This document shows positions 2,408-52,698 of a stretch of DNA of 64,000 bases, piece by piece. The stretch's first letter is position 1. Each line of letters opens with the position of its first letter. The notes under the pieces are model-generated. The model was not told the DNA's origin. It did not search any database and saw only the letters and a list, made by a program, of their open reading frames with translations. The stretch comes from Heteronotia binoei (taxonomy: Eukaryota). Location of the stretch: positions 30,566,001-30,630,000 of the forward strand of contig NC_083229.1 in assembly GCF_032191835.1 (NCBI RefSeq), written 5' to 3'. The position numbers and the translations under genes were made by a program.

Positions 2408-4039
2408 GTATGTTTTCATTTTTGTTAGTTCATTTTTGATGTCCGCATGGGACTGCACAGGCACATAGCTAGCCACCAGAAGATTTTGTAACTAGCTTAG
2501 TAACAAAGCAGGTGGAACCCCTCACAATGGGAGCTGTTGAGACCATTTTCCTGCCAATAGTTGCATGCTCCAGGGAGAGGCTCCACTCTGCCTCCGTTCT
2601 CTCTTTGCCACCATTGGAAAAGAACAGTTCTTGGCTTCTGTTTCTTGGTCTTCAAAAAATTTGTTGCTTTTGAAAAAGATGACAATGGATAAACACTCCA
2701 TTTGATTGTTGTGTCTGGGGGAGAGCCATAATGTATTGGCACTTAAAATCACACTGTTCAGCTCAAGGCCACTTTATGGGAAAAGGCTCTCTCTATTTTT
2801 TTAAAATACATCAATCTTTATTAAAAACAAAGATTTAAAACAAATACATAAAAAGAGCATCAATTTTGCTTACCAGACAGTTATGAATTTTGCTTGATTT
2901 TTTTTTAAAGGGATGGTGGCTGTAGGATTGTAAGCATCAAATGAGCCACATATATGGATGTGCACAGATGCTCAGTACACATTACAATTGTTAACCTGGC
3001 AGCAAAAACATCTGCCCTGCTAGTACAGCCTGTAATCTTAATCCCCAGACCAGTCCCTGACTGCACTTCCTACCCTCTATTGGTGATTTCAGCCCACTCT
3101 ATTCCAAGGTCAGATCTGAACCAAAGACATTCCAGGACACCCGGAAATTTCCAACCAGGTCCTCTTCCGAATCTCTACCAAAGAAACACAAGTCTAAACA
3201 TAAGACTCAATGTATAGGAATCAATTAAGCACCTGGAACTAAAGAAGCCAGGTTCAAAGGAATCAGAGTTGGTTCCAAAGACTGTTGTTGAGATCAGCAA
3301 GCATACTACCCCACACACTTCATCTCACACTTGCTTGTCAGCAGCACAGTTGGTACATGAACTGGCACCATCAGTTGATAATACCCACAAAATACATTCT
3401 AGGACCTCCTGCCCCACATTCTCAGTGGACACATTTGGGACCATGACAACAGTATCCTTGCTATCACCCTCCTCAGTATCATCAAGGATGGTCAGAACCA
3501 TCAGAACCATACATGGAACCAATGGGGCTGATGATGGAACAGCTGCAGACATCTGAGGACTTGGACCCTCATTCAGGACTGATCACTTATGGTTCCAAAG
3601 AGGAGGAGGAATTCGGGTCCATAGCCTGTTCAGGGGTGGCTTTGGAACTGTCCCCTGATGACGCTGTTGGAGACCATGACTCTCTGTTCCCAAATGAGAA
3701 CTTGCATCTTTATTCTGAACAAATGGTGCAATAATTAGACACCAGATAACATTCATGGAAGCTAGCCTTCGTAATAAGATCCTAGGTTGACTCTATCCTG
3801 ATATGCCAATGATTGTGGCCTTCCCACCTCTAGAGGGAATCATAGAGATGGTGAAATTCATTTGGGGGAAAATCATCTTCAATTCCTGCCATGTTTTGAA
3901 AACTCGAGAATATGTAGAGGGTTCAACAAGAAGGCGGTCCCTTCCTTTTCATCCATCCTGCACCATCCACTAGGGTGACCATAATGTCTGAAGGCCAGCC
4001 AGGGACACGTTGGGGGGGGGAGGTAGGGGTGTGCGCGCC

Positions 4040-4235
4040 GCCGGAAACAGGAAGTGACGTCACTTCCGGTGACGGCATGCCACCACAGGAAACAGGAAGT
4101 GACATCACTTCCTGTGACATCATTTCCCCGCGTCACCTGCCGGAAACGGGAAGTGACATCACTTCCTGTGACATCATTTCCCCCAAATGCCACTGCCGGA
4201 AACAGGAAGTGACTTCACAGCACTTCCTGTGACAT
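4040..4235. promoter_or_regulatory. About four tandem GGAAGTGAC(G/A)TCACTTCC palindromes (ETS-CRE composite-like)
   Basis: Perfect 18-bp palindrome 4050-4067; copies with one mismatch at 4095 and 4149; degenerate copy at 4205. Function not shown. Confidence 0.5.
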
Positions 4236-4748
4236 CCCCAAAAATCCCCCAAATATCACCGCCGGAAACAATTTTGTTCTGAAATCCTGTATATACTTCA
4301 TCAGTATATGGGATAAGGCACTTTCTCAACTGTGCTGCATAATGCAGCCTATTTATTTTGTCCTGTTTGCTCTGTTGGCTCTATCTGCGCCACCTTCATC
4401 ACTTTCGGGGTGTGGATCCCCCAGTGGGGTGCTCTCCCGACTCCCTCCGCCGGCTGTTTCTGATAGCCCTGCGCCTCCTCTTTCATTTGATATGTGTCCC
4501 GTGCGGGTGCTACCCTCCCGCCGGGAGATGCCGCAAAATGAGCCCCCCTGAGGCTTATGGCGGCAGGGCTCGGGGGAAGCGAGCTAGACTGCTGTTCTTT
4601 TGAGGGGTTATAGAGTGTTTCGAGCCCGTCCCTGTGGCATCGGTCCCATCGTTGTGGGGCCCAGGGGGCCGGCGCAGCGGCACGCCGAAGCAGCCTGTCA
4701 CTAATAACACAGGTCGAGATGCAGGACAGGAACTCGGAAGTGACCGAC

Positions 4749-4806
4749 AGGAAGGAAGGAAGGAAGGAAGGAAGGAAGGGAGGGAGGGAGGGAGGGAAGA
4801 AAGGAA
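4749..4806. repeat. (GGAA)n/(GGGA)n simple repeat inside the hAT element
   Basis: aggaaggaaggaaggaaggaaggaaggaagggagggagggagggagggaagaaaggaagg read directly. Confidence 0.9.
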
Positions 4807-4924
4807 GGCCGCCCCCCGCCCCCCCCCGCTTTCGGCCCCCTTACCTCGTTCCAGGGCGGCGGAGAGTCCAGCGGCGGCGGCGATTCCAGGGCGGCAGCCT
4901 CGCGGCGAGGGAGGGAGGGAGCTG

Positions 4925-5885
4925 CCGGCGCTGGCCTCTGGAGGCCTCCAGGGACCAGCGCCGGCTGCTCCGCGGCTTCCCCGCGGCCTCCGCTGGTCCC
5001 TGGAGGCCCTCCAGAGACTCTGGAGGGCCTCCAGGGACCAGCGGAGGCCGCGGGGAGGCCTTCGCTGGCCGGCGCTGGTCCCGGAAGGCCTTCCAGAGGC
5101 TCTGGAAGGCCTTCTGGGACCAGCGCCGGGTGCTCCGCGGCTTCCCCGCGGCCTCCGCTGGTCCCTGGAGGCCCTCCAGAGATTCTGGAGGGCCTCCAGG
5201 GACCAGCGGAGGCCGCGGGGAGGCCTTCGCTGGCCGGCGCTGGTCCCGGAAGGCCTTCCAGAGGCTCTGGAAGGCCTTCCGGGACCAGCGCCGGGTGCTC
5301 CGCGGCTTCCCCGCGGCCTCCGCTGGTCCCTGGAGGCCCTCCAGAGACTCTGGAGGGCCTCCAGGGACCAGCGGAGGCCGCGGGGAGGCCTTCGCTGGCC
5401 GGCGCTGGTCCCGGAAGGCCTTCCAGAGGCTCTGGAAGGCCTTCCGGGACCAGCGCCGGGTGCCCCGCGGCCTCCCCGTGGCCTCCGCTGGTCCCTGGAG
5501 GCCCTCCAGAGACTGTGGAGGGCTTCCAGGGACCAGCAGAGGCCGCGGGGAGGCCTTCGCTGGCCGGCGCTGGTCCCGGAAGGCCTTCCAGAGAATCTGG
5601 AAGGCCTTCCGGGACCAGCGCCGGGTGCTCCGCGGCTTCCCCGCGGCCTCCGCTGGTCCCTGGAGGCCCTCCAGAGACTCTGGAGGGCTTCCAGGGACCA
5701 GCGGAGGCCGTGGGGAGGCCTTCGCTGGCCGGCGCTGGTCCCGGAAGGCCTTCCAGAGGCTCTGGAAGGCCTTCCGGGACCAGCGCCGGCTGCTCCGCGG
5801 CCTCTCCGCGGCCTCCGCTGGTCCATGGAGGCCCTCCAGAGACTCTGGAGGGCTTCCAGCGACCAGCGGAGGCCGCGGAGAGGCC
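4925..5885. repeat. GC-rich minisatellite, 165-bp unit, about 5.8 copies, each unit containing two long palindromes
   Basis: Unit anchor CCG(C/T)GGCCTCCGCTGG recurs at 4981, 5146, 5311, 5476, 5641, 5806 (exact 165 spacing). Confidence 0.95.
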
Positions 5886-6925
5886 TCTGCCACCGCTGCC
5901 GGCCCCGCGCTCGGGCGGGGAAGGCGGCGAGTGAGGGAGGGAGCGTCCCTGCGCATGCGCAGGGGCCCTGCGCAGGCGCAGGGACGCTCCCTCCCTCACT
6001 CGCCGCCTTCCCCGCCGGCGCCCGCGGCCCACCGCCTCCGGGGCTGGCTAAACCGGGACCTTTAATGTTCCCGGTATAGGCAGCCCGGGAGCCGGGATTG
6101 GGTGGCCAGAACCGGGAATGTCCCGGGAGACCGGGACGGTCTGGCCACCCTACCATCCACCCTATTAGCTGAAGAGATGGAGGCTAAGCAAATAGTTGGA
6201 TCCATTTCACTTCAGGGCAGGAAGATCAATGCCTTGAGCCATAAAGCTTTATTGGTCATCAACCCCAGAAGAGCTATCAAGCTATTATGGCAGTGTACCT
6301 CTTGCTCTGCTACTAAGCTACATGAAAAATCTTTTTTGTGGCTGGCCTGCACACCTGTGCAGTCCCACATTTGCCTGCACAGTAACAACTCAATGAACAA
6401 CATTTACAGGTAAGGGCAACATTATGTTCATTTACTGGATGTTTTGATATTGTGTGTTCAGTGAATTCATAAGGAGAACCAGCACCATTCTTCCCTTCTA
6501 ACAGATCAGATTGACTACAAGAAAAGATGTGGTTTCTGGGACTGCATGATTCCTTCGTTAAGGATGATGGGAGAGATTGAAAGGAAAGTCTGGGTAGAAA
6601 GAGTTTATGATCCCACTTCCTATTCCTTATCTTTTTTACAATGTTCATAGGTCCACGTCTACAGTGGGCCAGACAGTAAACCTATAGGAAGACACCTGTG
6701 TCACTTTACTCAATGTATAGTGCCTGCAGTATGTTAGGAAAATAACACAGGTTTCTCGATAACAAAATCCAACAAAGACTTGTTGTGTCTTTTATTAAGA
6801 CTGAACCATACCCTCCCCAGGCTCTGCATTCTAATCTCCATGAATGTCCTAATCCAGATTAGAAAACCCAGTTCTCTTCTCCCCCCATTTTTTTACTTTG
6901 TTTTGTTTGTTTTAATAATAATAAT

Positions 6926-7010
6926 CAGTCTGATGAAGAGTTCTGGAGAACTTGAACACTTGTATTTTGTGTTGTGTTAGTTTGATTGTTCTTAATAAAA
7001 GATATTACAA
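6926..7010 (+). pseudogene. Decayed Penelope-like element end with hammerhead-ribozyme-like motif
   Basis: CTGATGA 6930-6936, stem AGTTC-TGGA-GAACT, then TGAAC where CGAAA is expected. Confidence 0.55.
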
Positions 7011-8905: not shown

Positions 8906-9310
8906 CTAGGCTTTTAGTGAACAGCGGATGTCCAATATTATTGGTTCCTCTTGCTCAAACTGCTGTCTAGCTGTTGTGGGGAGGGAGCTAGTTAACCTAG
9001 GAACACAGGCCACATCTGTGTATAAGGATATAATAATATCTGAAACAGTACTGGGATAGTACTATTTTTTTTTTCTCTGAGTGCCATCTTTATTATTGTT
9101 TATTGCAATTTTAATTGATCTTTTTTTTAAGAATTCCAATGTGATTATTGTTATAACTTTTATATTCCAACCTTTCCTAAGCCCCTTTGCCAGGAGGGTG
9201 GGACAGAAAATGAATGAATGAACAACCTTACAGGCCTGATTTTTCATTCTTAGACCCAGGAGGGCTAGAGGCTTGGTCCCTTGGTCTCCGGCTGTCTGGG
9301 CAGTTAAGTG

Positions 9311-10382
9311 CAGCGGTCCCCAACCTTTTTGGTCCCAGGGACCGGCTCTAGGGCCAGCCCGCCGACTGCAGCCCAGAGCAGGCAGTCTGGGGGGACCCAA
9401 TTCCTCCCTCCTGTTTTCCTCCCTCATTTAACTCCTCCCTCCCTAGCCACCCATGCAGCCTCACCGCTTCCTCCTGTCCCCATTTTCCTCCTCTCTCCTT
9501 CCCCCCCGTGCAGCCTTGCCACCTCTTAAAGGTGCAACTTGACTCCTACTTTGTTCTACTGCTTCAGACCAACTCGGCTGCCAACCTGGATCTATCCTCC
9601 TCCCACCCGTTTTCATCCCTCCCCCCCCCCCATGCAGCCTTGCCACCTCTTCTCTCCCCATTTCCTCCATTTTAAGGCTGGGGAAGGGTGGTGAAGTCCT
9701 TCCAGGTCGCTCTCTCCGCCAAATAGCTGTGGGGGGGAAACCGCCACAGCCAGTGGCACCTGAGGGCATGTCATGCCCCAGGCAGGCACCCCCCCAAAGC
9801 ACTTCAAACCCCCCTGGGCCCGCAGCACTCACCCCTTCCTTCCCTTCCCTTTCTGTCCTGTTCCATCGCTTTCCCTCCCCCGCACCCCAAATCATAGCAC
9901 AACGGAAGGAAAGGGAAGGAGGGTGGAGGTGGCGGTGGCGGGCTCTGAGGAGGAAGCAGACACACTGTGGCCAGCAGGGCGGGGGGAGGCAACAGGAAGG
10001 GAAGCGAAAGAGGTGACAGAGGAGGAGGCAGGCATGCTGCGGCTGGAGAGCCCAGGCGCAGGGGGGCAGTAGGCAAAGGGACGGAAAGGGAAAGGAAGGC
10101 AGCTGGTGGCCAGCAGCAGCGGTGAGCAATGCTGCCCTTGCCTCCTTCCCATTTGAGGAGGAGGCAAGGGCAGCATTGCTCGAAGCTGCTACAGCGGCTT
10201 TCCCAGCCGATCAGCTGATTAGTGGGAAGGGGAAGGAGGTGGGGAGGCTGTGCAGGGGGGACGAAGGAGGAAACAGGGGGAGGAGGAGGCACCGCGGGGG
10301 GGGGGGGGGCGAGGCTGCGTGGCCCATGGAAAACAGGCCACGGCCCACTACCAGTCCCCGGCCCAGGGGTTGGGGACCCCTG
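9311..10382. mobile_element. hAT (Charlie/MER1-like ends) non-autonomous element, 1072 bp
   Basis: CAGCGGTCCCCAACC ... GGTTGGGGACCCCTG; perfect TSD GTTAAGTG at 9303-9310 and 10383-10390. Confidence 0.9.
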
Positions 10383-11005
10383 GTTAAGTGGACTGGTGGC
10401 AGTGATACCAAGAGACATGAGGACTCACACTTCAGCCCTTTTGTTTGTCTTGCCCAACCCATAACACTTTAAAAGGTCTTAGCTTTAAGACACCTCTGAG
10501 TATGAAAGTTACATATAGATCCCTGACTCAGAAGAGATTAGTACACCTAAATTTCCATTAGCTGAGAATGACTTGTCCCATTAAATGGGACAAGAGTAAC
10601 TTACTTTGGAATAGGGCCAGTGTGAAAGATGCATGAGCAAGTGCTGTCATGGCACCAACTTTTTAAAAAAAATTCTTGCAGAGAACCAGTGATAGCAAGT
10701 ATACAAAACACTGCTTTTTACAAAAGCAGTCTATGAAAGAACAGGCGGTGCTTCCAAGGAATAACAATTATCCTGTGATGGAAAATAATCAAAGAAAACT
10801 TGGTGGAAGAAAAAAGAGAAGGAAAGGGACCAATTATAGGATGGGGAGTCTGCAGCAGTTGAGCCTATGGCCGCAAAGATAATGTTCATTCCATCTATAT
10901 TGCCTTGATCATCTTCTTTGGACTTCCATTTTAGTTTCCTGTAATTTTTATCTGGTCTGGTCCTACAAACACCATAAACATAGAAGATATTGGAAGAAGA
11001 TATTG

Positions 11006-15654: not shown

Positions 15655-16040
15655 TGTGGGGTGTGTTTTCCCCCCCCTTGAGAAAACTTTTTGGATTTAG
15701 ACCCGCTGTTTTTTAGGTCCTGCTGTCTACACTTGCATTAACAATGAATATGACAACTGTTACTTTCCATGATCTTCCAATACACTCTGATCTGAAGGAA
15801 GTGTATTTCTCATCTTAATTTGAAAGAGCAGTGCCTCTTGACCTGTTTGTGGGGTGTGTTTTTTCCCCCCTTGAGAAAACTTTTTGGATTTAGACCCGTT
15901 GTTTTTTAGGTCCTGCTGTCTACACTTGCAGTAACAATGAATATGACAACTGTTACTTTCCATGATCTTCCAATACACTCTGATCTGAAGGAAGTGTATT
16001 TCTCATCTTAATTTGGAAGAGCAGTGCCTCTTGACCTGTT
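15655..16040. repeat. Tandem duplication of 193 bp (2 copies, about 4 differences)
   Basis: 15655-15847 vs 15848-16040 compared by eye. Confidence 0.92.
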
Positions 16041-16345
16041 TATTACTTAATGTGATTAGAAGGGTTTGAAGAGGGTTCTTAGATGTGTTTTCTCGAGAAT
16101 CCTTAAATTTCATTGTTTCCCCACCAGTGTCAGATTATCCAAAATACATAATAAATGAGAGATTGCCACTGGCTAATGTACTTGAGCTAGAAGTGAAAAT
16201 TCAGAAAAAAAGTATTTTAAATACTGTAGAGTCCAGGTAGTCTGCTTTGTAGCTTCCAAACCTTTCAAGATAGTGATTTTTTTTCTGTTATCATCCTGCA
16301 AAAAGGAGCAACATATTAATCATAACTCTTTCTGAATTTCCATAG

Positions 16346-25045: not shown

Positions 25046-25423
25046 CATACATTACATCAATTATACTTATAAAACATGGTTAAAACAATTACAGAGTATT
25101 AAGATTAACATAACAGTATGGCGTTATAAACAGGTTTCAATAAATTTCAGAAGTAAAAACATTTCAAGAATAAAAGCATTTCTAGCAGCATATCTAGATT
25201 TATCACAGTTTTCCGCTAGTTGAAGGCCATCTTGAAAAGGTGGGTCTTACAGTAATACTGTATATCTGAATATAATGTTCAGAATAGATAAAGTGGACCA
25301 GGATATGGCCAGTGGCTACATTACTTGTTGTTGTTGTTTTAAAAAAACCCCTTATTTAATAGATTCCTGTTAAATAATTTGATATAAGGAACAAAATTCA
25401 TGGTTTGCTATTTTTTTCTAAAG

Positions 25424-25612
25424 CTCATTACTGCAGTACTCCAGAGTCACCTCCTCATGGGTTCATTGTCAGTCAGACAGGCGGACAGCTCAACAGTGTG
25501 GTTCGCTGGGCTTGTGACCGAGGATATCGGCTCGTTGGGAAGAGTACTGCTGTTTGTAGGAAATCTTCCAATGGATATCATGCATGGGATGTGCCTGTCC
25601 CGGCCTGTCAAG
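25424..25612 (+). CDS. CSMD3: CSMD3 exon (189 nt), Sushi domain
   Basis: ctaaag|CTCAT ... CAAG|gtaaat; (A)[12 protein letters not shown]...[11 protein letters not shown]...[10 protein letters not shown]. Confidence 0.95.
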
Positions 25613-28058
25613 GTAAATTCTTACTTCATTATCAATTTTTAAAAAAGCTTTGGATTTATGTCCAGTGGTTCCACAGATGTTCCAGTGTGCCAATATTGAG
25701 CTCGACACAAGGAACACAAGGCTTGGATCCACTGAAGATTTTCATTGATGGGGAGGGGTTTCCATCCACAGAAAGAGACTTTCTATCTTCCCTCCTCTGG
25801 CTGCAGCAAGAGGGAAAAAGCTGACAGAAATTATGTTCCCACCACCACCACCCCACCTATGAAAGTTCTCTGTAGGATCCAAGGTAAGATGTACATATGA
25901 TGTTGTTCTTGTGAATAATATTTGTAGGAAAGATATAATTCATGTGTGAGTCTCATGTGCCCACTGGAGTCATCAAACATTTTTAAAAACCCTTAATCAG
26001 ATTGTTTATTTCCAGTTATCTTGGCTGTATTTCTGTCAAAGAAACCAGGCACTTAGGGAAGGGTTTGAGATTCCCTGAGCCCCAGCTTTTGGGGGTTACT
26101 TTTGGTTTCACTTTGGTTGCCACCAACACCTTTATACTTCTAAGCAATATCTACCTGCAGATTTTTATTATTTTTTTGAGGAAGGTACATCTCTGTCAAG
26201 GCAGCTGACATCTAAATCTCTAGGCACAAGGGTGTGTCTTTCATCTTCTCTGCAGTCCCACTTTGGGACTATGCATGCACAGGCCAAAATGTCTCTGTGC
26301 ACAGAAGACAATTCGACTAACAGGAAGTACAACTCTGTTTTTCTTATATTTTTCATGCTGGCTCCTCCAGATCAATGAAAATGTGCAACTGTAGAACAGA
26401 TAAGCATATGAATAAGTCTTGGAAGCCCACAGGGCATCTGAACATAGAATAGTATTTTTAATGATAATCTCAGGAGAGGAGGAAATACCAAAGAAAATTG
26501 GCATCTTATACAGAACAAAAAGATGTGTATCAGTATGTTTTTATTATTAAGCTGAATTTATTCTAAAACTTAAACAAGGAGGAGTTATCTACGGCTTCTT
26601 CAGTACTAAGATGGACATCATGATCCTAAGCAAAAGGGTAAATTCACTGTTGTATGCAAATAGCTGTAGCTTATTCCACTGTTAATGTTTTGAAGATTGT
26701 TCCAGTAGAGTCCAGGGCCCCTTCCATATAGAAAAGAAAGTAGGTTGAGGAAGAAGAGGAGAAAAAGACAGAACAGAAGTGCAGGGGATATAAGGACAGA
26801 AGAATAAACTGGATTTTGTATGATATATCCTGCCTTGTGTAGCTTCCTTGTCTGTATCTAGATTTTTAAAAATGTTGTGACTGTAACATAGAAATGTTCT
26901 TTTTAAAAAGAGGACCCTGAGAGCACTTCCTTTGAAACTAGTGTTGATATGTTTAAAAAATTTCCAGACTGTGGTTCCTTAAATAGTTTGGATCAATGAT
27001 GGTCATTTAATTTTGCCAAGCATGTTGAGTAAGTAATATTCAAAGGACATTTGGTAATTACTTCAAAATAAATGTTGCCTGAGGTGTATACCAGAGCCTA
27101 GCTGAAGTCTAACCACATTCTTCAGGGTTTTTTTTGGCTTAAATATTGTATATTGTGTGATGCATGTCCCTTCATAGTCTGCAGTATAGTTTCCCACTAT
27201 AATATTATTATATTTTCAAGATAAAGAATGGCTGTTAAAATTTTATTGTGCTTAAATGAAGTTCATTTATGTGTTTATTTTCTTCATTTGTTTATCGCTT
27301 TAAACTTCCAATACTGTTGAAGCTCCTAAAACAGACAACACATTTTATATTAAATTTTTTATTTTTATATAATTTCCTATGGGTCTGTCTAATGCTTTTA
27401 CGGATTCAGATTTATTATACAGCTTTACAACTTTGATCAAAGTTCTGTGGATTAAAATGATTATATGCAATTTTCTGTAGTGTTGAAATGGTAAGAGTAA
27501 TGACTTTTAGGCTGATCATGGGTAATCGGCAACATGTGTTTTTATAATACTTATGTTATTATCTTGGGACTTGATTGATAATTACTAGTGGCAGTTTTTT
27601 ACTAATACATTTTTCTCCATTCATTTTATAAAATCAAGGAAGTTTGCTGTTTGATTGCATAAGTAAGGAAAAATCATCAATACTGTTTTTATTCCTTGAG
27701 CTTATTTCTGGGATGTGTTTGATGCCACATGTAGAGGAATGCAGACCTCTATTTATGCTGTCCAAGTATTTCCCCTACTTAAATGCAAGTCCACATACAT
27801 GATCTTCCTGACCTTTTGACTGAAATGAGATTGAAATTTCCTCCATGCTAATTCTCATAAGTAGTTTGAGATAATAAACTTTTGATTTGAAATACAAAGG
27901 TTCATCATCATGTCTTCTGTGCAGTCCCACACAGGACTGCCCTGATGCAGGGCCTCTCATGGAAGAGAGAAGTGCATAAGCTTCTAGAAAACTCCTAGAT
28001 GAGCACTCCCCCTCCCCTCTAGAGGCAGAGGCCTTTTTCCTGCCCCTATGGTCACATG

Positions 28059-42544: not shown

Positions 42545-42749
42545 TAGGGTTGCCAAGTCTGTGTTGGAAAATACCTAGAGACTTTAGGGATGGATGTGGG
42601 AGAGGGCAGGGCTTGGGGAGGGGAGGGGACTCAGCATGGTTCAATGCCATACAGTCTACACTTCGAAACAGCCATTTTCTCCAGGGGAGCTGATCTCTGC
42701 TTTCTGGGGATCAGTTGTAAAAGTCCCCACCTGAAGGCTGACAATCCTA
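42545..42749. mobile_element. TAGGGTTGCCA-ended hAT-like MITE
   Basis: TAGGGTTGCCA ... TGACAATCCTA; same internal sequence as 43981-44196. Confidence 0.7.
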
Positions 42750-43980: not shown

Positions 43981-44196
43981 TAGGGTTGCCAGGTCTGTGT
44001 TGGAAAATACCTGGAGACTTTGGGAGTGGGTTCAGGAGAGTGTGGGGTTTGGGGAGGGGAGGAGCCTCAGCATGGTACAACACCATAGAGTCCACCCTTC
44101 AAAGCAGCCATTTTCTCCAGGGGAGCTGATCTTTTCCAGCTGGAGATCAGTTGTAAAAGCAGATCTCCAATCTCTGCCTGGAGGATGGCAACCCTA
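43981..44196. mobile_element. TAGGGTTGCCA-ended hAT-like MITE
   Basis: Perfect TIR TAGGGTTGCCA / TGGCAACCCTA; TSD not clean. Confidence 0.75.
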
Positions 44197-52121: not shown

Positions 52122-52698
52122 TAGGGTTGCCAGGTCTGTGTTGGAAAATTCTGGAGACTTTGGGGATGAATCCGGGATAGAATGGGGTTTGGGGAGGGGC
52201 CTCAGAATGATACAGTGCCAAAGATTCCACCCTTCAAAGCAGCCATATTCTCCAGGGGAACTCACAAAAAAGAGAGAACCACAGAATAATAATAGCCTAT
52301 ACAAAAATAGACCATGATAAGATAACTAACAAACTTCACACAATATGTTTGAAATAATCACCTTATATAAAGTTAATGATATATCAAAAGCCAGTTCAAA
52401 CAATTGAATCATCAAGATACAATGATTTCCTCTATGTTGATAAATAAACACATGATTTAGCAACATACAAGAAATCATTGTGTCTTGATTCAGTTGTATG
52501 AATTGGCTATTGATAAATCATTAACTTTGTATAAGGTGATTATCTATTTCAAATATATTGTGCAGTTTGTTAGTTATCTTTCCATGGTCTATTTTTGTAT
52601 AGATTACTATGTTCTCCAGGGGAGCTGATTTCTGCCTGATGAAAATCAGTTGTAAAAGCAGGAAATATCCAGGTCCTACCTGGAGGCTGGTAACCCTA
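52122..52698. mobile_element. TAGGGTTGCCA-ended MITE split by a 350-bp AT-rich insertion
   Basis: TAGGGTTGCCA at 52122, TGGTAACCCTA ending 52698; host sequence TTCTCCAGGGGA duplicated at 52248-52259 and 52612-52623. Confidence 0.75.
52297..52602. repeat. AT-rich inverted repeat (about 130-bp arms, about 40-nt spacer)
   Basis: CTATACAAAAATAGACCATG...CAATGATTTC versus GAAATCATTG...CATGGTCTATTTTTGTATAG. Confidence 0.9.

Follow-up and report, generated by a model that had tools for sequence, protein, structure and literature searches.

A CpG-rich, non-coding hAT-type element in the genome of the gecko Heteronotia binoei, probably one copy of a recently active family

A 64,000-nucleotide stretch of the Heteronotia binoei genome (contig NC_083229.1, positions 30,566,001 to 30,630,000; hereafter the window) contains a hAT-type transposable element of 2,182 bp at window positions 3971-6152. 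The element is non-coding and precisely bounded, is flanked by a target-site duplication, and belongs to a multi-copy family whose members share its left and right parts. It is probably one copy of a recently active, non-autonomous family that would be mobilized in trans, and whose motif-rich left part would be the relic of a parental promoter. The original prediction for this locus, made from the sequence, had described a young element that might disperse a portable CpG-island promoter with an ordered cargo of transcription factor motifs.

Results

Boundaries and terminal repeats

The element is enclosed by a perfect duplication of its target site (TSD) of 8 bp, CCATCCAC, which adjoins both of its ends and occurs in the same letters at 3963-3970 and at 6153-6160. 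Its terminal inverted repeats (TIRs) are TAGGGTGACCA on the plus strand (3971-3981) and, read from 6142-6152 on the minus strand, TAGGGTGGCCA, and they match at 10 of 11 positions. TIRs of hAT elements are short (about 10-25 bp) and open with YARNG, and both repeats conform to this rule. We scanned the entire window for 8-bp TSDs immediately next to inverted pairs of 11 bp that differ at no more than one position. Not counting the internal palindromic array, only two such combinations were found, one being the element with its TSD (3963-6160) and the other a second hAT at 9303-10390, and shuffled windows contained a mean of 0.15 such pairs. These results confirm the predicted hAT insertion with intact TIRs and a perfect 8-bp TSD. 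A blastn comparison detected no further copies of the element within the window.

Copies in public reads and contigs

We compared window positions 3000-7000 with four public sequencing runs at a likeness of at least 85%, namely DNA contigs of two organisms coded A and B, RNA contigs of organism B, and raw RNA reads of organism B. The depth was essentially zero on the flanks and high on 3971-4740 and about 5966-6152, even in assemblies of 11-19 million letters. In the matching records, the likeness ends exactly at 3971 and 6152, beyond which their flanks disagree with each other (agreement 0.42-0.67), which indicates that one sequence is present at many insertion sites; behind 6152 alone, the loose ends comprise 31 RNA reads and 7 contigs with a flank agreement of 0.42-0.6. 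Counts in the identity classes 99% and above, 95-99%, 90-95% and under 90% were 12, 15, 18 and 6 in X1, and 28, 190, 97 and 44 in X16. With many records at least 95% identical, and with exact ends joined to many different flanks, the proposal of a young family is upheld.

The shared family core amounts to about 1-1.2 kb, with a left part of 770 bp and a right part of 190 bp or so. Single DNA contigs cover 4155-4650 with 6 differences in organism A and 4139-4604 with 11 differences in organism B, and thus the block of units resembling ETS and cAMP response element (CRE) sites, the AT-rich stretch and the CpG-rich interior travel together. In an index search, small DNA assemblies from three organisms (A, B and C) contained 29-45% of the exact 31-mers of the left module, and two further organism labels contained 9-17%, with four studies overall. 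One RNA contig joins 4584 to 6042 and represents a shorter derivative. An exact-pattern scan of public metagenome contigs found no full-length copies.

The central part of the element is unevenly represented. Positions 4742-5009 are deeply covered in organism A and nearly absent in the three organism-B runs, while the array region (about 5010-5950) has thin coverage in each of the four runs and is nearly absent from those of organism B. The sole notable array match in the other runs comes from organism A, at 4935-5034 with 100% identity. This coverage is suggestive of copies that lack the array, although hairpin-forming arrays with 75% GC assemble and sequence badly. Of the predicted ordered cargo, the ETS-CRE units are therefore shared by the family, and the array and the arm with the perfect NRF1 site are thin or unseen in other copies.

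Left module

Adjacent to the left TIR, a terminal segment with a G-run (3982-4040, plus strand) is present in family contigs and reads and is unlike the right end beyond the TIR. It is followed on the plus strand by an array of four ETS-CRE-like units (4041-4269), each opening with CCGGAAAC, with a period of about 54 bp (54 bp x 2.4 at 87% by Tandem Repeats Finder, TRF). The four units contain AGGAAGTGAC[G/A]TCACTTCC, and the pattern CCGGAAACAGGAAGTGAC occurs 4 times versus 0 expected. The array was found in contigs of both organisms A and B, where unit length varies by 19 bp behind 4168. It includes an exact match to the ETS<->CRE 16-mer CCGGAAGTGACGTCAC, the sole one in the window, at 4054-4069 of the minus strand. 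The ETS<->CRE composite motif is reported to be bound cooperatively by GABPalpha and CREB1 (PMC3464117, PMC4555227), and the same factors are predicted, from the motif, to bind at 4054-4069. In the remaining three units, TGACATCA stands in place of the consensus CRE. The ETS-CRE palindromes of the original prediction thus stand as four units with motifs far above the shuffled level, but only one of them is a perfect 16-mer.

The ETS-CRE array passes into an AT-rich stretch (4270-4370, plus strand) with TATATA at 4290, about 20 bp past the last unit, and with a small hairpin and T-run (4334-4358). Positions 4171-4370 have a GC content of 0.43 and a CpG observed/expected ratio (o/e) of 0.35. A core-promoter role is predicted for 4270-4370 from its sequence. 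The adjoining CpG-rich unique interior (4371-4748, plus strand) is shared by the family, is matched by RNA contigs at 97-100% over 4294-4733, and carries no coding signal; it ends near the predicted ETS-like site, which is indeed present as CGGAAGTGAC at 4735-4744. The expected (GGAA)n repeat is also found, at 4749-4808 (TRF period 4 x 14.8), and is followed by a C-run with two CCGCCCC boxes (CCGCCCC x 2.3), the whole segment extending over 4749-4829 on the plus strand.

For the motif counts, 300 shuffles of the element that preserve its dinucleotides served as the reference. The element contains 8 MGGAAGT (shuffle mean 0.40), 6 TGACRTCA (0.03), 2 TATAWA (0.02), 14 CCGGAA (2.2) and 18 CCGGGA (4.2), together with one NRF1 site GCGCATGCGC (0.00), a count reached in 0 of the 300 shuffles. 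The GC box GGGGCGGGG was found once versus a mean of 0.39, and GGGCGG 5 times versus 6.9, and hence GC boxes are not enriched. The GC boxes that had been named among the cargo do exist, as the two CCGCCCC in 4749-4829, but their counts are at the chance level.

Array, palindrome and right end

A tandem array of palindromic 165-bp units occupies 4936-5886 (5.8 copies, 96% matches, TRF score 1741). Each unit carries two CCGGGAC and two CCGGAAG, and a single unit folds, as single-stranded DNA, into one long hairpin (-106.9 kcal/mol, z -18.9). The predicted 165-bp hairpin array is accordingly real in the window copy, with the reservation that its coverage in other copies is thin. To the right of the array, a fold identifies a near-perfect palindrome of ~100 bp centered at 5965 (about 5915-6015), with the NRF1 site GCGCATGCGC in its left arm (5951-5960) and GCGCAGGCGC in its right arm (5970-5979). 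Only the first half of the supposed NRF1 double palindrome is a perfect site, the second being a near copy. An organism-A contig leaves the element sequence exactly at the palindrome center, 5965, and so the left arm, with the sole perfect NRF1 site, may be a local inverted duplication. Matches of these palindromes to microRNA precursors (Rfam mir-1258 and others) were rejected, since the best score of 56.3 bits is below the gathering threshold of 74 and matches on both strands of perfect palindromes reflect generic hairpin scoring.

The right subterminal region (6020-6152, plus strand) is represented by family contigs or reads in all four runs. It contains eight CCGGGA, which occur in either orientation, as well as a second, internal copy of the TIR (6098-6108) and a hairpin at the terminus (6100-6150). 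All eight CCGGGA fall in the last 100 bp of the element, and the first 300 bp at the left contain four CCGGAAAC and TTCCGG. The longer word CCGGGAC is nearly confined to the element, with 12 of its 13 window occurrences inside it, 3 in the right subterminal region and 9 in the array.

Coding capacity and base composition

Open reading frames (ORFs) in all six frames over 4555-6156 are open merely because the GC-rich palindromic array has no stop codons. In the ten stop-free frames of the element, we found no Pfam domains and no coding remnants of a transposase or host exon at E values up to 1, and a protein search with an 81-aa ORF of the element returned no homologue. These results agree with the predicted absence of a transposase.

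The element has a GC content of 0.68 and a CpG o/e of 0.68, compared to a CpG o/e of 0.34 in the left flank, 0.11 in the right flank, and 0.23 in the whole window, as expected from the high CpG density against CpG-poor flanks described in the original prediction. At the sequence level, CpG islands are defined by a length of at least 500 bp, a GC content of at least 0.55 and a CpG o/e of at least 0.65. By this definition the element is a CpG island over its 2,182 bp (GC 0.677, o/e 0.68).

The second non-coding hAT-type element lies 3 kb away at 9311-10382 (9303-10390 with its TSD). It has a perfect 8-bp TSD, GTTAAGTG, TIRs of the form CAG[C/G]GGTCCCCAACC, and a GC-rich interior with mirrored pyrimidine-rich and purine-rich halves. 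This element has a GC content of 0.63 and yet a CpG o/e of 0.31, which shows that CpG richness is not general to GC-rich hAT filler in this region. Its CpG o/e suggests greater age or more decay than in the element at 3971-6152.

Transcription and methylation signals

Between the left tip and 4740 the RNA coverage is even (about 11, 31, 41, 50, 24 and 18 per bin), and the reads are equally divided between both mate orientations, as in an apparently unstranded library. RNA reads run across both tips into differing flanks, 5 at 3971 and 31 at 6152. Read starts form one weak pile-up, at 4605, of 9 molecules. This pattern neither shows nor excludes an internal transcription start, since read-through, copies residing in host transcripts, or DNA carry-over would give the same result.

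Two of about ten left-module differences at which all runs oppose the window copy are CpG-to-CpA (4085 and 4234), which in this small sample hints at decay of methylated CpG. The differences among the array units, likewise few, conflict with this hint, as they suggest little excess decay. The CpG richness of the element probably reflects recent insertion more than escape from methylation. Youth alone can explain it, because the high CpG content of a young copy needs no protection from methylation.

Other features of the window

Matches to the TIR pattern at 42545, 43981-44196 and 52122-52698 were considered as relatives of the element and rejected, as they belong to a different family of miniature inverted-repeat transposable elements (TAGGGTTGCCAGG...). 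These copies (42545 onward, 43981-44196, 52122-52698) have ends TAGGGTTGCCAGGTCTGTGTTGGAAAA..., and, to judge by their flanks, they duplicate TA and not 8 bp; within the 577-bp copy at 52122-52698 lies an AT-rich insert that has an inverted structure of its own. A retroelement fragment some 2 kb upstream of the hAT copy is marked by a 354-aa ORF (672-1736) with a reverse-transcriptase domain, RVT_1 (E 2.3e-34). An ORF at 25405-25824 with a Sushi/SCR domain (E 1.2e-07) is probably one exon of a Sushi-repeat gene, and the hAT copy may lie within an intron or upstream of this gene. At 15655-16041, a 193-bp unit is repeated twice with 97% identity.

Discussion

Proposed mechanism and points that weigh against it

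In the account that we consider probable, the element would be excised and reinserted in trans by a hAT transposase that is encoded at another site and that would recognize the 11-bp TIRs and CCGG-containing subterminal repeats (CCGGAAAC and TTCCGG at the left end, CCGGGA at the right end). The block 70-330 bp from the left tip, with its four ETS-CRE-like units followed by the TATA sequence, would together with the CpG-rich stretch most likely represent the promoter and leader of the parent autonomous element. This block would have been retained in a deletion or filler derivative because it overlaps cis-sequences needed for transposition. The palindromic 165-bp unit, which shares CCGGGAC with the right end, would have expanded to 5.8 copies here as an unstable local expansion, and a neighboring segment would have been duplicated in inverted orientation in the window copy.

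Several observations weigh against this account. An autonomous partner with the same ends and a BED/DDE/hAT-dimerization transposase was not found within the window, and the superfamily is therefore assigned solely by TSD length and TIR sequence. The TIR is short (11 bp, one mismatch), the left and right ends are dissimilar beyond these 11 bp, and their subterminal repeats differ in word, the putative transposase sites being recognized by sequence only. The ETS-CRE units match the host composite motif more precisely than a transposase site requires, with one exact 16-mer. Among the array units, CpG transitions are not in excess (about 18 differences include 4 of them, and CpG sites account for 18% of positions); this hints at low germline methylation, with which these small numbers would fit. 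Finally, 25 organism-B RNA reads match from 4269 rightwards and share a different upstream sequence (agreement 0.83), which could mean that the interior has a different source.

The match of one RNA contig ends at 4270, beyond which its sequence differs. The discontinuity at 4269/4270 may mark the edge of a module, the junction between subfamilies, or a weak splice donor on the minus strand. A plus-strand splice acceptor at 4269 is excluded by the lack of AG, and the donor ATT|GTTTCC on the minus strand would be a weak one.

Alternative explanations

The module boundaries at 4269/4270 in the RNA reads and in one contig would fit a Pack-type capture, in which the interior (about 4270-5965) would be host DNA, for example a CpG-island promoter. 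Gap filling or template switching would have brought this DNA into a hAT shell, and transposition would then have multiplied it. Elements of the hAT type are the commonest carriers of animal Pack-TIRs (PMC8277862), and non-autonomous relatives of Ac carry filler that is occasionally captured from genes (PMC3260210). On the other hand, no frame of the gecko element has an exon or protein signal, the 4270 junction is continuous in the high-depth DNA contigs of both organisms A and B, and animals have few multicopy Pack-TIRs, with four cases or 1.4% (PMC8277862). Overall, we regard such a capture as unlikely.

The original prediction leads to a different reading, in which the family would act as a mobile CpG-island promoter or enhancer that is complete in itself. 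Its GABPA/ETS, CREB and NRF1 sites would protect the copies from methylation and initiate transcription, perhaps bidirectionally, so that each insertion would seed a new regulatory island. CpG-island composition over 2.2 kb, the exact ETS<->CRE 16-mer with seven further MGGAAGT sites, and TATATA about 20 bp after the last ETS-CRE unit are what such a module would contain. The ETS-CRE block is common to copies in two organisms, family sequence is present in four RNA libraries, and the array units lack excess CpG decay. Against this reading, there is no step in RNA depth downstream of the TATA sequence, and reads crossing both tips fit passive transcription in an apparently unstranded library that carries no 5'-end information. 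Moreover, three of the four units read TGACATCA instead of CRE, the changes at 4085 and 4234 are those expected from the decay of methylated CpG, the GC boxes are at the chance level, and the array and the perfect NRF1 arm are thin or unseen in other copies. We consider this reading possible but doubtful. Its fullest form would be a young gecko hAT family with a complete compact RNA polymerase II promoter (four GABPA/CREB-type sites, TATA and a CpG-rich leader), unmethylated in the germline, which plants new islands or alternative promoters and whose expandable array multiplies ETS and transposase sites; this combination appears quite unlikely.

A local GC-rich minisatellite or palindrome block with a chance 8-bp repeat and short inverted ends, as might be argued from the 11-bp TIR with one mismatch, the ends that are unlike beyond it, and the lack of a second copy in the window, is extremely improbable, given the chance expectation of about 0.15 pairs per window and the independent runs that join the same sequence to many flanks exactly at 3971 and 6152.

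Significance

The non-autonomous hAT family that we favor would by itself provide a clean, well-bounded and recently active example in a squamate genome, of use for repeat annotation, as an insertion-polymorphism marker, and in finding the active transposase. If the copies were unmethylated and started transcripts, they would be a case of DNA transposons spreading ready-made CpG-island promoters in a vertebrate. Such a mobile promoter, if true, would bear on the origin of new promoters and non-methylated islands, and the many near-identical copies make the idea directly testable. A literature search found no paper that describes a non-autonomous hAT acting as a CpG-island promoter, nor one on this family, and a search with the TIR string of the element returned only unrelated primers.

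Comparison with known systems

Among transposons in general, SVA retrotransposons have been called 'mobile CpG islands'. Like SVA, the gecko element is a non-autonomous composite with a GC-rich variable tandem array, and it carries CpG-island-like DNA to new sites. The likeness is functional only, since SVA is an RNA-copied retrotransposon moved by L1 (for a general description, see PMC12593883), whereas the gecko element is of the cut-and-paste type with TIRs and an 8-bp TSD. The resemblance to animal Pack-TIRs (Tan et al., 2021; PMC8277862) consists in a hAT-bounded, non-coding and foreign-looking GC-rich interior that is transcribed with its flanks. The gecko family differs from them in being multi-copy, compared with four multicopy cases among the 370 reported (PMC8277862), and in having no exon signal.

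Characterized hAT ends such as those of Hermes are dissimilar, with imperfect TIRs and asymmetric subterminal repeats read by BED domains, and hAT elements prefer nTnnnnAn targets (PMC10368747). The gecko element has the same dissimilar ends, imperfect short TIRs, asymmetric subterminal repeats and 8-bp target. It departs from Hermes in that its single site, CCATCCAC, fits half of nTnnnnAn, with A at position 7 and C at position 2, and in that binding of its repeats by a BED domain would be presumed by analogy. A further parallel in organization is with the maize Ac/Ds system, which has 8-bp TSDs and 11-bp TIRs. Its transposase binds hexamers that lie no more than about 200 bp from either end, and the filler of its non-autonomous relatives is variable (PMC3260210). 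Ds and Ds-like TIRs start with TAGGG or CAGGG, and the modal size is about 1 kb in some classes (PMC3260210). The gecko element shares with Ds and Ds-like elements the 8-bp TSD, the 11-bp TIRs, the packed subterminal repeats, the lack of a transposase and the variable filler. It is distinguished from them by its vertebrate host, by other TIR and subterminal words, and by a CpG-rich interior that combines vertebrate ETS<->CRE-type motifs with a long palindromic minisatellite.

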